NCBI GenBank assembly: GCA_025594325.1
Contig: JANHCV010000009.1
Coordinates: forward strand, 1,116,001-1,180,000
DNA: 64,000 bases
Source: Blastocladiella emersonii ATCC 22665
Lineage: Eukaryota; Fungi; Blastocladiomycota
Direction of reading: 5' to 3'
The position numbers and the translations under genes were made by a program. A model generated the notes under the pieces. That model was not told the origin of the DNA. It saw only the letters and a program-made list of their open reading frames with translations, and did no database searches. Below are positions 12,944 to 64,000 of the stretch, in pieces. The first letter of the stretch is position 1; each line of letters starts with the position of its first letter.

Positions 12944-14849
12944 TCAGTTGATCAATTGATCGAAAAACTGAAAATTGGCCGCCTCGGCGCGGGCCAGCAG
13001 CTTGAACCGCTCGCTCGGGTCTTCGCCCGCGAAGCCCGGCGCGTCCGGATCGCACAGCCAGACAAACTCGCGCTTCCACTTGCCGCTCGCCCAGTCGTCG
13101 ACCCACTCGAGGTACGTGGGCGGCGCCCAGCGGCCGCGCGCGATCATGCGATACTCGTGGCGGATGTCCGGCTGGACGTCGGGCACCAGCGCGGTCGAGA
13201 CCAGGAACGCGGACGTGGCCGCTTCGATGACCGCGCGCACGCGCGCCGGATCCGGGTGCTGCTCGGCGAGATCGAGCATGGCCGGGAGCAAGCTCACGGC
13301 CTGCATGTGGTCCGACGGCGTGAGCATGCGGAGCTGCTTGGGCTTGGTGAGTTTCGCAAACTCGATCACGAGCACGGCGCCAAACGGCACGTTCTGCGCG
13401 CGGAACGAGAGCCGCGGGCTGAGTCGACGCGGCGCGCCGCCAGGGCGCTCCTCGTAGTAGTTCGAGGGCTCGGAGAAAAGCATGCCCGCAAGCATGTCCG
13501 GGAAGAGCCACCCGCGCGTGACCTGCGAGACGAGCATTGACGGCGTGACGCGGCACGAAAAAAAGAACCGCGGCCCAACTGGCGCGGCGTAGAACTTGAC
13601 AAAGACAAGCAGATGGTCGACCGTGTACCGCTTGACGAGCGCTTTGGGAACAGAGGGCGAGCCCCGAATCAAGTCGTCTGCTGGATCGGCCGTGGTCATG
13701 CAGATTGCTGGCGCGCACACGAGGCGAAGCACTGGAGGCGAAGCGGTTCCGCCAGCAGGAAGGTCGGCGCCGGTTCCGGCGGCGACAACGTTCGAAAGCT
13801 TCGGCTTTTTGCCCTTGCCCTTGGCCTTGCCCAGCAAGAGTCGCTTTGCGTTGGACCCGCTGTCACTGGCAGCGACGAGCTGCGCAAGAGTAAGCTTGGG
13901 GTCGTGGAGAAGACCATCGGCCGATACACGAAGGTCCGTCCCCACGCCGCCGCTCGGGAGCCGCCAATACAACGGTTTCATCGTCGAAACGGCGATGGGA
14001 CTGAGCATTGTGGCTTCAAAAGCAGCCTTGGCCGCGCCCCACGTCGTATCGGCGGAAAAGACCGCCGTGTAGTGGGCAGGATACGTGTCCGAGTCAAAGT
14101 CCCAGATCCCGGGCCCAGCGTACATCGGACTGAGCGAAATGGTCGACACGACGTCTACGAGAATGGTGGGAGCGCCGGGGAGAATGCCAGGCATCTCCGT
14201 GCACGGGTGATAGCGGTAGAGCGGTCCGTTGGTCGAGCCGCACGGCGCCGGAAGCAGGTGGAACGAAGGAAGGCCGTGCTCGTCAAGATCGCGCACGAGA
14301 TCGTGGTGAAGCTCAGGCATCGGTGCCGAAGACGCGGGCTCTTGAATCGCTGAGTGGGACGGGGATTTGGGAGCGCCGGCAGGAGTTTCAAGAATCGACC
14401 AAACAATCAATTCCATGGCGTGACCTGGGTGGTCTTTGAAGGTAAGCGTGGTTTCACAGCCTGTGCCCGTGGAGCTCTCGACGATCATCTTCGCCTGCTG
14501 ATAAAAGTTTGTCGCGAGCAGAGTAACGTGCTCTACTTCCATTTGCGTCAAGTGCGTGCGCGAAGCGTCAGGATGATTTTCCCAGATGGCTTTCACAAGC
14601 GCGATAATTCCGATGTTGTGGTCGGCCTCGAAATCAACGTCAACTACCACACGAGTTGACGAAGTTGGCGGAGCATCAAGGCAAGCAGCATGAGCAGAGC
14701 TGGTCGGTTCGGCCGGTCGGGCGCCCGCGTCGCGAGGTTCGACCTGAGGGGTCGGCGGAGCATCATGTCGAACGCGCTCGTCCAAAGCAGGAGCGGAGTT
14801 GGTCGGTTCGACCGGTTGGATGTCCGCATCAACAGGTTTGACTTGAGAA
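12944..14849 (-). pseudogene. Modular family copy 1, 3' half (variable domain, UBL-like region, C-domain), cut off by the transposon
   Basis: HHDLVRDLDEHGLPSFHLLPAPCG, VFSADTTW, LLVFVKFYAAPVGPRF, YYEERPGGAPRRLSPRLSFR, EYRMIARGRWAPP shared with the other copies. Confidence 0.85.
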
Positions 14850-16100
14850 CACCCCTGCGGGTCGGCTTGCGGTGAACATCGCTCCACCGCACCGATTTTT
14901 ATCGGTCCGCCCCTCCCCGCTGAAAACGCATCCTTGCATTGCATTTTCACGCACTCCAAACCCCTAGATAAAAATCAGAGCTCCCTCACTCGATAAAAAC
15001 GCAGTCTGTGGATGCATAAAAATCGATTATGCGGTCCCCTGAAGAGCGAAAAAAAAGCGCTGGGCGCGTCGCCCAGCGCGCGATTCGATTTTCAGTGAAC
15101 TTAGTGTATTGTGAAGAAACACGCTCAAAACGGGCAGTCACTCACGCGCCGACGTGTTACCAGGAGCCGAATGCGCCAGCGCCTTAGTGTCTCGAGTTCC
15201 AGATTGGGTGAGTGATGGCGCGCGAGTCAGGAGGGCGAAACTGGAGCGGATGTGTTTGAGGCCTCTGTCAGCAGATCGTACTGAGCGTTGTTGGGCGGGA
15301 GCAAGGAAAACGTACAGGGTGAGAAACCTCTTGGTCATGACGAAGCGGGCGCACTGAGTACTTGACTGAGCAGAGCCCATGGCCTACTGAGTTAGCGCGA
15401 GACGTACCGTATTCCAACGCGTGGTCACTGCTTGAGCTTGGGCTGAAACGAGAGCATACGAGTTTCGGGCGGATGCTGTCAGGGACGTTGTTCACTCGAA
15501 TCCGGACTGGATGAGGCGTGAAGTCGGTGAGGGCGGGGCAGCGACGTGCGCGACGGGTGGCGACGGCGGAGAGCGGGGCTGCGGCAGGCGGTGGACGGCG
15601 ATGGCGGAGTCCGAGGCAGCGGGGTGTGAGATGCAGCGGGGAGTGCAAGGCAGCGACGGGCGGCGGGTGGCGATGGCGGTGCACGAGGGAGCGTCGGGCG
15701 GCGAGTGGCGACAGCGCAGGTCGAGGCAGTACCGGTCGGACGGCAGATAGTCGGAGGCGCCAGCGGGGTGTGAGCGAACGGGAGCGAGGGCGGGTGGCGG
15801 GGGGCGAGGCGCATTTGTAGCGGGGGGCAAGCCACACGGGGCTGATCGAGCTCTGATGGCGAGCTGCAGCGCGCACGCGCGCGACCTGTCAAGCCCGTCA
15901 CGGCCCCACCGCGCGTCCTTTGCGTTTCGCGCGCGCGAGGTCGGCGTCGCACCCCACGTCGAGTACACCCGCTCTCTCCTGTGAATACTCCCTGCACACA
16001 CAAAATATACCATGAAACGTTATACTGGATCAAATGAAAGTCAAGTCTGCTGCACGGTGCCGCTCTGCGAATCGTGAGGACCAGGCGGTCAGCGCCATGA

Positions 16101-17600
16101 TCACCGCCCGCTCGCCGTCCGCTTGCTCCGACGGAGAGGCTGCTTGGGCGGCGCGGGCTGCTCGGGCTCGGCGTCCTCCATCTCTTGGTCCTCCTCCTCG
16201 GCCAGGACCGTGCGACGGGCAGCGGCGCTCTTCTTGCTACCGCTCGACTTCCCGCCGCCCTGCTTGCCGCCACCCGTGCTGCGACCCGTCGAGCCAACGT
16301 ACTCGGTAGCTGACGCGCCCGCGCGGCCATGCTTCCCGCCGGTCACGCTTGAGCCGGCACCCCCGCCCCGCACCTGGCTCTCGTCGCTGTCGCTGTCACT
16401 GTCGCTGCTCGACTTGGCAATCTCGCTGTCGCCGTCGGACTCGGCAATCTCGGACGCGCGAGCGCCTGCTGCCGTGTGACGACGCTTGCGCGGTGGCTGC
16501 GCCTGCTCCTCGTCGTCGTCCTCGTCGTCGTCGCGGCCCTGCTCGACCTCCTCGTCATCCACATCTTCGTCGTCGCCTCGGGTCAGCTCGCTGCTGCTGC
16601 CACGACGACTCGGTGACGACGCGAACAGGCGACGCGGCGTTCCGGTCGTAGCGGGCGGCGGCAGCGGAGGGTGAGACGCTGCGAGTTGAGCCAAACGACG
16701 TGGCGAGAGCACGCCGTGCCCCATGACACGCGGAAACCGCTGCGGCCGCCGCTTCCTGCGACACACCACGAGCCGATCGCGAATCACCGGCCGTGCGCGG
16801 GTTGCTGGGCGCCTGGGTGGTGGCTAGTTGAGTGGTGGTCACACGCTCGATCCGCTGCGCGAGCCATGAATTCGCGCCGCCTAAAAGTTGAGCGAGGGCG
16901 ACCGAAGCGTCAGAATCTGGAACAATCGCGCCGCGTACATGCACAGCCACGAACGCACCCGCGCCAACACGTGTAGCTGTCCCATGCGCCGCCGATCCCG
17001 TACGCGCTGATCCCGCGTTGGACTGGGACTCGCCGCTTGCACCACGGTCCGTCCCGTCGCGCGCACGTGGATCGCGGTGGTTGCTGACGACTTTGGCCAC
17101 GTCGCCGATCCCCGCGATCACGTCTTCGCTGGACGGGATCATGTCGGCCGTGGTCTGGCCGATGCGGAAGTCGAGCGCCTTCAACGCCGCCTTGAAGTCG
17201 CTTGTGCTGAGCGCGCCCGGTGCGACGAGCTGCTTGTGGATATCGACCAAGATCTTGTCGAACTTGATGAGCGCCTTCTGGTGCTCAACACCGCCGCGGC
17301 CGGTCATGACCTTGACGATCTTTTCGAGGTCGTCAAATTTGGTCGACGACTTGACCGACCCCTTCTTGACCACCTCGTCAAACTTGCCGTTGTTGATGGA
17401 CTTGTTGAAGACGTAGCGCTACAGGAATCGTTGAGAGTGATGAGCAGCTGATTCTGCGCGGTCCCCAAAGGAATCCGTACCACGGCCGCGGCCTGCCACA
17501 GCAGCGAGTGGTCGAACGCCTCGGGTAGCCGATGGTTGTTGAAATCGGTAACGTGGATCGTCTCGAGGGCAGCGTTGCGGACGTGAATGAAGACCTTGCG
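16101..17600 (-). other. Additional exons inside the transposon, encoding a helical domain and an acidic/basic low-complexity tail
   Basis: GT..AG-bounded segments; RYVFNKSINNGKFDEVVKKG..LDFRIGQ and a D/E/S-rich tail with PPRKRRH. No family recognised. Confidence 0.4.
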
Positions 17601-63482: not shown

Positions 63483-63814
63483 TATAACTCACATGTATGA
63501 AGATGTTTTGTCCTTGTAATCGGCTCAGATGCACTCAAGCTGATGCGCGACAGCAGACTGCATCGCGTCGCCGCCGTTCTGCACTTCCAAGTTCGCCGCG
63601 TAGACGTGATCATGTAATGCTTTGACTAGAGTTGATACGTTTAATTCGACTCGTGCACCTACTCAGAACAACGAACTCTGCCGCGGACGAAAAGAAGACG
63701 CGGCGGCTACGCGCACGTGTCTCCCATGATCAACCGAGTTTCATGTTCAGGCTCTTCGTTCACCGAGATGCGATCAAACTTCTCACGACGACCTCACCTC
63801 CGCATGTAAAACGA

Positions 63815-64000
63815 ATGGAAACGCACTGGAACTCGGCGCAATATGCGCCTATGTATCACGGCCACCCGCCTGGCCCGTTGCCGGGGTGGCCCGGTTTTCT
63901 CGGTCCCGCGCCTCCGCCGCCTCAGCCTTACCCGCATGCTTACTCTCAGCCGGCGCCCGCTCAAGAGACCTCGACTGCTTCGCCTGCTTCTACCTCTGCT
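63815..64000 (+). CDS. Modular family copy 6, 5' end (runs off window)
   Basis: METHWNSAQYAPMYHGHPPGPLPGWPGF preceded by CATGTAAAACGA. Confidence 0.8.
   Translation, partial: METHWNSAQYAPMYHGHPPGPLPGWPGFLGPAPPPPQPYPHAYSQPAPAQETSTASPASTSA

Follow-up and report, generated by a model that had tools for sequence, protein, structure and literature searches.

A Blastocladiella emersonii multigene family combining a USP7-like ubiquitin-like domain pair with a probable Gag capsid-like N-domain

We analyzed a 64,000-nucleotide (nt) stretch of the genome of Blastocladiella emersonii ATCC 22665 (GenBank assembly GCA_025594325.1, contig JANHCV010000009.1, positions 1116001 to 1180000), which in its full length is referred to here as the window and whose G+C content ranges from 59 to 75%. 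The window carries six copies, c1 to c6, of a multigene family whose proteins combine a five-helix N-domain with a pair of ubiquitin-like domains (UBLs). These copies and their common module order had been proposed in an earlier note on this DNA. The order is plain in the alignments, and a tblastn search with the intact 943-amino-acid (aa) open reading frame (ORF) of c5 recovered all of the copies, the five paralogues showing 43 to 62% identity to c5 (c1 at 13028 to 14311 and 20952 to 22036, c2 at 22402 to 25465, c3 at 27875 to 31282, c4 at 31637 to 33589, and c6 from 63815 to the end of the window).

The count of six copies in two clusters holds for the window; the family itself is larger. 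We found at least 17 loci in B. emersonii, at least eight copies being located outside the arrays linked to the window, and 17 is a lower bound in that the genome was read only around proteins already found. The plus-strand array runs past the window edge from c5 to at least c10, all in region L004 (coordinates offset by 56616 from those of the window). Two further tandem copies, L005a and L005b, lie 75 kb beyond, and L006, 420 kb beyond, is a segmental duplicate of c1 and its DUF4470 neighbor. Single copies are found on contig 3, contig 7 (two), and contig 8. Phylogenetic trees built from the N-domain and from the UBL region resolved three clades with long terminal branches: clade 1a comprises c1 to c7, L005a/b, and L006a; clade 1b comprises c8, c9, c10, and L001; and clade 2 comprises L002, L003, and L007, which are dispersed, single-exon genes with a different C terminus.

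An exhaustive HMMER search of 1.84 billion representative proteins with a 450-position profile of the C-terminal half returned 10 matches, all from B. emersonii, and none of our sequence searches, this one included, found a relative outside this species. Pfam gave no match for whole proteins, pieces, or single domains, even at an E value of ≤10, and PDB sequence-profile searches with the whole family, the N-domain, and the C-domain returned chance matches only. Word-indexed protein searches with the C-terminal half of c5, the clade-2 UBL region, and the whole-family alignment gave no match, the organism's own gene models being fragments outside the length window, and a look-up of the exact c5 sequence found no record. 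The literature searched yielded no description of this architecture, of a Gag-derived host gene family in fungi, or of a fusion of a capsid lobe to USP7-type UBLs. Collectively, these results bear out two earlier proposals, namely that the family is lineage specific and that no named family shares its architecture. The copies most likely constitute a host multigene family, so far known only from B. emersonii, with predicted proteins of 875 to 1141 aa.

Copies c3, c5, and c6 are intact. The c5 gene (60651 to 63482, plus strand) is an intact single-exon gene and served as the reference for the structure model, and c6, whose 5′ end occupies positions 63815 to 64000 of the plus strand, is a two-exon gene encoding 1110 aa (L004:7199-10593). 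The c3 gene (27803 to 31282, minus strand) consists of exon 1 (31282 to 29920) and exon 2 (29865 to 27803), separated by a 54-nt segment (29866 to 29919) with canonical intron signals; it starts with GTACGG, contains GCTAAC, and ends with GTAG, and its removal yields an ORF of 1141 aa. The in-frame TGA that had been read as a nonsense mutation of c3 lies within this segment, and c3 is therefore counted as intact. Short introns of 54 to 86 nt occur at the equivalent position of the linker in c2, c3, c6, L005b, L006a, and L001, as well as in c1, and their removal from c3, c6, L005b, L006a, and L001 yields a single full-length ORF of 1016 to 1141 aa; c5, c9, L005a, and clade 2 are intron free. 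These segments are predicted to be spliced, and the intron consensus drawn from annotated neighbor genes was ambiguous.

The remaining three copies in the window are broken. In c1 (12944 to 22036, minus strand), a pseudogene, the N-terminal part (22036 to 20482, with an intron at 20785 to 20728) is separated from the C-terminal part (14849 to 12944) by a 5.63-kb insertion (14850 to 20481) with 34-nt inverted ends (82% match) that begin with CAC(C/G)CCTGCGG, and a 1-nt deletion is found near position 21921 relative to its close paralogue L006a. The insertion encodes a 631-aa ORF (19314 to 17419, minus strand), which by eye we take to resemble Plavaka/KDZ-type (CACTA-related) transposases, a likeness that no tool confirmed; Pfam found nothing in this ORF or in the further ORFs of the insertion, and no second copy was present in the eight sequences examined. 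The insertion is located between repeat units of the c1 linker (14687 to 14847 and 20519 to 20580), which are about 62 nt long and 99 nt apart (33-aa repeats). The c2 gene (22363 to 25465, minus strand) has two exons; removal of the intron (24587 to 24518) joins the frames at its first apparent break, while an in-frame TAA (23751 to 23749) remains just before the HHDLVRDL block, making c2 a probable pseudogene. The decayed copy c4 (31568 to 33700, minus strand), at the 5′ edge of the array, has lost about 345 N-terminal residues together with the N-domain and shows at least three frame changes and a stop codon at 31918 to 31916. Over positions 20300 to 25536, the window was matched letter for letter by contigs of two deep runs on DNA of the same sample, so that long-read errors do not account for the c1 frameshift, the c2 stop codon, or the transposon junction. 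The earlier tally had two intact copies and three broken ones (transposon, nonsense, and frameshifts) and missed the intron of c3; the broken copies are c1, c2, and c4. Beyond the window, c7 has a linker frame change (L004:11430-11480) that no canonical intron explains and is a probable pseudogene, and c8 has a frame change in a T-rich stretch (L004:14330-14370) and a second intron-like segment before the C-domain. Most copies of the family are intact, and full-length ORFs (875 to 1141 aa) are kept in at least nine. The earlier proposal of a modular multigene family that gains and loses copies is supported.

To model the protein, we used AlphaFold on c5 with 25 paralogue rows that represent the three clades and were divided at the borders of the domains; this cutting was adopted since MAFFT had placed the optional domain on N-domain columns. 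An input of four sequences gave a predicted local distance difference test (pLDDT) score of 42 and was unusable, whereas the 25 rows gave about 90 in four folded parts. From the N terminus, the proteins comprise a conserved leader, the five-helix N-domain, an acidic linker, an optional alpha/beta domain, the tandem UBL pair, and a helical C-domain. In c5 (all on the plus strand), the N-domain (60849 to 61145, aa 67 to 165) forms five helices with a pLDDT of about 90 and is followed by a disordered linker (61152 to 62150, aa 168 to 500) containing 17% Ser, 14% Pro, and 12% Asp with a net charge of −28. The HHDLVRDLDEHGLP block (62151 to 62195) forms a short helix in the model (aa 502 to 511). 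UBL-A (62256 to 62600, aa 536 to 650), with a conserved Y-x-G-x-G-x-W-D-F loop, and UBL-B (62727 to 63074, aa 693 to 808), with the LxFVKxY and FYEERPGNxPPRRLSPR blocks, are modeled as the equivalents of USP7 UBL1 and UBL2, respectively. They are separated by a disordered, Lys/Arg-rich insert (62601 to 62720; e.g., KGKKKR) that looks like a nuclear localization signal. The C-domain (63156 to 63425, aa 836 to 925) has four helices and the EYRMxARGRxAPP and DPDAP motifs. The disordered stretches of the model span residues 168 to 502 and 651 to 690. Throughout the family, the linker is 300 to 450 aa long, acidic, Ser/Pro/Asp rich, and disordered; an acidic Ser-rich motif within it was rejected as a conserved family feature, being common to c5 and c3 only. 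The optional domain, about 115 aa long in c3 (29219 to 29578, minus strand), is also present in c1 (14309 to 14659), c2 (23752 to 24114), c6, L005a/b, and L006a, whereas c5 and c9 lack it; no match to it was found. The C-domain had no structural or PDB sequence-profile match and no language-model lead, and it looks family specific.

The strongest structural match concerns the UBL pair. A Foldseek search of the PDB with the c5 model gave an E value of 5e-8 at a probability of 1.0, and the top 22 matches were all USP7 UBL structures. VIA-align placed model residues 544 to 914 on USP7 residues 560 to 793 with a Z score of 17.1, the next unrelated folds scoring about 9. In the AlphaFold database, the matches were USP7, Ubp15, and UBP12/13, at human residues 564 to 770; Swiss-Prot models of USP7 orthologues behaved likewise, and the ESM Atlas agreed with a match of USP7 type. 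The two beta-grasp domains superpose together, as a pair, on USP7 UBL1-UBL2, which in USP7 is a docking platform for partner peptides. In the model, the UBL pair of the family thus clearly matches USP7 UBL1-UBL2. The family profile recovered no USP7 among the 1.84 billion proteins, and Pfam detected no UCH or MATH domain on any piece; by domain context, the proteins are not true USP7 orthologues. In USP7, an acidic patch on UBL2 binds basic peptides of the KxxxK type; the loop that by eye we take to be its equivalent is presumably basic here (PPRRLSPRxSWR).

Two leads point from the N-domain to Gag capsids. Over model residues 71 to 164, VIA-align matched it to the capsid of dArc1 (6s7x_A) with a middling Z score of 7.4 and a root mean square deviation of 2.7 over 80 of about 95 residues, an alignment that spans the entire domain, and dArc1 was the only row other than UBLs among the 50 best of a wide structural search. 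Language-model features of residues 60 to 170 pointed to the DUF4939, Retrotrans_gag, Ty3_capsid, and DUF1759 clusters with a score of 0.87, which is a lead only; the ten best named clusters were all Gag families of one clan. A search of BFVD found no viral capsid match. Judged from the model, the N-domain probably adopts the fold of the capsid N-lobe of long terminal repeat (LTR) retrotransposon Gag, as in Arc, and the dArc1 match and the language-model features together lead us to consider an origin from a Gag capsid lobe somewhat more probable than the contrary. With such an N-domain, the family would be a domesticated Gag fusion.

The sequences are under constraint. Ratios of nonsynonymous to synonymous substitution rates (dN/dS), calculated per module by the Nei-Gojobori method, were 0.15 to 0.23 for the N-domain, 0.23 to 0.5 for UBL-A, 0.2 to 0.6 for UBL-B, and 0.2 to 0.9 for the C-domain. 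Synonymous divergence (dS) was mostly near 1, i.e., near saturation for most pairs. The youngest pair, c1 and L006a, had a dS of 0.2 to 0.4 and a dN/dS of 0.18 to 0.35, indicating that c1 evolved under constraint during most of its existence and was disrupted recently. The copies are old, constrained duplicates with some losses, evolving under purifying selection. The family had been described as turning over rapidly; this does not agree with dS values near saturation in most pairs, dN/dS values of 0.15 to 0.6, and long terminal branches. The c5 copy is a mosaic, its N-domain being closest to that of the neighboring c6 (proportion of synonymous differences, 0.39) and its UBL region closest to that of c3 (56% versus 42% identity), which suggests gene conversion or recombination between array members.

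Sequences upstream of the coding regions are also shared. A start-stop mini-ORF, ATG-TAA, stands 11 nt before the start codon of c5 (60640 to 60645, plus strand) and, at a distance of 10 to 11 nt, in 11 of 13 subfamily-1 copies, with the variants ATG-TGA in c8 and ATG-CAA in c7 and L006b. It is kept before c1, c2, c3, and most of the L001, L004, L005, and L006 copies though the coding sequences have diverged by 40 to 60%, and this conservation suggests a shared translational control. Many copies also carry, about 85 to 110 nt upstream of the start codon, a promoter-like module consisting of CGCACGGG, 3 to 5 bases, and the E-box-like palindrome CACGTG (e.g., at 22125 to 22150 for c1 and at 31375 to 31400 for c3). 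The spacer between c2 and c1 (22037 to 22362, minus strand) contains both this module, about 95 nt upstream, and the mini-ORF. In an all-against-all blastn comparison of 17 spacers and flanks, this module of about 40 bp was the only common sequence, apart from the duplicated flanks of c1 and L006a.

On these grounds, we regard the family, with a probability of roughly 0.55, as host-encoded, non-catalytic adaptor proteins that are intracellular and probably nuclear. Pfam scans of the family proteins revealed no catalytic domain, and the c5 sequence, with its polar, Pro-rich N terminus, shows neither a signal peptide nor a membrane helix; together with the layout of the modules, this fits a non-enzymatic adaptor. 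Such proteins would act as adaptors, probably in the nucleus. By analogy with USP7, the UBL1-UBL2-like pair may dock partner peptides, the capsid-like domain may self-associate or bind capsid-like targets, and the optional domain and the diverged paralogues may shift target specificity. The most likely setting, and here we speculate, would be intragenomic conflict, e.g., a check on retroelements similar to that exerted by Gag-derived restriction factors of the Fv1 type. The more specific picture of a fungal counterpart of these factors, in which the capsid lobe recognizes assembling retroelement capsids, the UBL pair couples the target to the ubiquitin system, and the arrays were diversified by conflict with retroelements, seems doubtful to us. 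The data are consistent with a role in recognition or defense within the cell and do not favor a secreted effector.

Several observations weigh against an adaptor with a Gag-derived lobe. The Z score of 7.4 lies in a range (below about 8 to 13) that is common for helical domains, the language-model score is under 0.9, and the N-domain has neither a Pfam Gag match (E ≤ 10) nor more than chance matches in the PDB profile search. A possible Gag fold is the sole link of the family to retroelements. For the UBLs, the Pfam families USP7_ICP0_bdg and USP7_C2 gave no sequence match at an E value of ≤10 (UBL-A and UBL-B, two clades). Finally, half of the six window copies are dead, no RNA run is listed, and the splice sites are predicted only.

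An ordinary scaffold family of the ubiquitin pathway is the most probable of the alternatives. The N-domain would then be a small helical bundle unrelated to Gag, and the proteins, with no link to genetic conflict, would modulate or mimic USP7 docking as decoys or co-factors, be it in chromatin regulation or in normal protein turnover. In favor of this, no match other than that to USP7 UBL1-2 is strong, non-catalytic proteins with USP7-type UBLs are known from plants, Rhizophagus, and Pandoraviruses, selection is purifying, and three diverged single-copy members, located on other contigs, have the look of stable housekeeping genes. However, the best structural match of the N-domain and all of its top language-model matches are Gag families, and a core pathway component would not usually come in tandem arrays that include pseudogenes and an optional domain. 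We consider this scaffold possible but unlikely.

The units might also be mobile, either as a non-autonomous, Gag-only element, i.e., an LTR retrotransposon of the TR-GAG type, or as cargo of a DNA transposon. TR-GAG elements are described from plants (PMC4350172). The possible Gag-like N-domain, the many and partly decayed copies, and the position of L001 directly upstream of a TnpB/Fanzor-like ORF would suit such an element, but several observations count against it. No repeat beyond the module of about 40 bp is shared between the two flanks of a unit, and a unit bounded by LTRs was rejected, as blastn of the 17 spacers and flanks revealed no terminal direct repeats. The units are arranged head to tail about 300 bp apart, Pfam detected no reverse transcriptase, integrase, or zinc knuckle, dN/dS is below 1, and the Fanzor-like ORF adjoins one copy only. 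Moreover, most copies keep an intron at the same place, which argues against retrotransposition, since this would remove the intron. The copies most likely do not represent a transposon ORF, whose defining features they lack, and a mobile element is largely refuted and very improbable. A mostly dead family, i.e., silent remnants of an old expansion, is about as improbable. Copies c1, c2, and c4 and the adjacent c7 are broken, no RNA run is listed, and public annotation calls fragments only; nevertheless, at least nine full-length ORFs of 875 to 1141 aa persist despite near-saturated synonymous divergence, dN/dS is 0.15 to 0.6, and the promoter module and mini-ORF are conserved. The weakest candidate, a family of secreted or translocated Crinkler-like effectors, to which the earlier note had drawn a loose analogy, would explain a modular, expanded, lineage-specific family and a UBL whose LxFVKxY motif is reminiscent of the Crinkler LFLAK motif, but it is extremely unlikely given a polar, Pro-rich N terminus with no hydrophobic signal or signal peptide, an internal USP7-type UBL pair in place of an N-terminal header, a 90-aa helical C-domain with no enzyme or toxin match, and the free-living, saprobic life of B. 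emersonii.

If the N-domain of the putative adaptors is truly Gag derived, the family represents a domesticated retroelement gene that, in an early-branching fungus, has expanded to 17 or more copies. Its natural variants, which belong to three clades, differ in the presence of the optional domain, and include fresh pseudogenes, would then also help in asking what the USP7 UBL1-UBL2 platform does when freed from the protease.

Several features of the surroundings and of the public annotation deserve mention. A DUF4470 gene of 1221 aa (9148 to 12813, minus strand) lies directly downstream of c1, and the pair of family copy and DUF4470 gene is duplicated 420 kb away (L006:11300-15084), where both are joined in a single public model, KAI9173308.1 (1472 aa). 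The TnpB/Fanzor-like ORF (L001:10337-11956; Pfam Cas12f1-like_TNB, E value of 1.5e-9) begins about 70 nt downstream of the stop codon of the clade-1b copy in L001, and the public model KAI9183892.1 fuses the C-domain of the family to it; a link between Fanzor and the family was rejected, such an ORF standing beside a single copy only. The GenBank models H9P43_007322, 007323, 007333, and 007347 are fragments of family genes (131 to 431 aa), and KAI9173192.1, the model of c3, treats as intron most of the sequence between the end of UBL-A and the middle of UBL-B. Public annotation thus breaks the family genes into fragments and adds one false fusion each with a Fanzor-like and a DUF4470 gene. From positions 25509 to 25600 on, contig depth in the two DNA runs rises from about 35x and 160x to 583x and 1577x, respectively, and many different flanks join at 25507 to 25509, which indicates that the 2.3-kb gap between c2 and c3 contains, immediately upstream of c2, the start of a high-copy repeat; neither an ORF nor an internal repeat reveals what it is.

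Among known systems, the Crinklers of oomycetes and chytrids are likewise expanded and modular and contain a ubiquitin-like fold. In Crinklers, the Ubl is single and sits in an N-terminal signal or translocation header, which is followed by variable C-terminal enzymatic domains; our family, in contrast, has a USP7-type pair of UBLs inside the protein and lacks an enzyme domain. Among the domesticated Ty3/gypsy Gag genes (Arc/dArc1, PNMA, RTL/SIRH, and PEG10; Fv1 as a Gag-derived restriction factor), it is dArc1 whose capsid lobe aligned with the modeled N-domain of about 95 aa and five helices, and, as with these genes, the family belongs to the host and no pol gene lies close by. Unlike them, it has one lobe only, no zinc knuckle, and no Pfam match and is fused to UBLs, any homology being putative. 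Protease-free UBL pairs of USP7 type like those of the family are found in "USP7 ICP0-binding domain" proteins of plants and Rhizophagus and in "USP incomplete domain" proteins of Pandoraviruses. These are uncharacterized, and their database names mention no capsid-like N-domain; their models align only to c5 residues of about 533 to 920, with no detectable sequence relation. The closest likeness is to the HUBL region of USP7/HAUSP (Ubp15, UBP12/13). Unlike USP7, the family has no MATH/TRAF domain, no USP catalytic domain, and no UBL3-5, its identity is about 13%, and its UBLs are split by a 40-residue Lys/Arg-rich loop and fused to other modules. Nevertheless, the tandem beta-grasp arrangement is the same over about 220 aligned residues, and the LxFxKxY and YEE motifs of USP7 UBL2 recur in UBL-B of the family.

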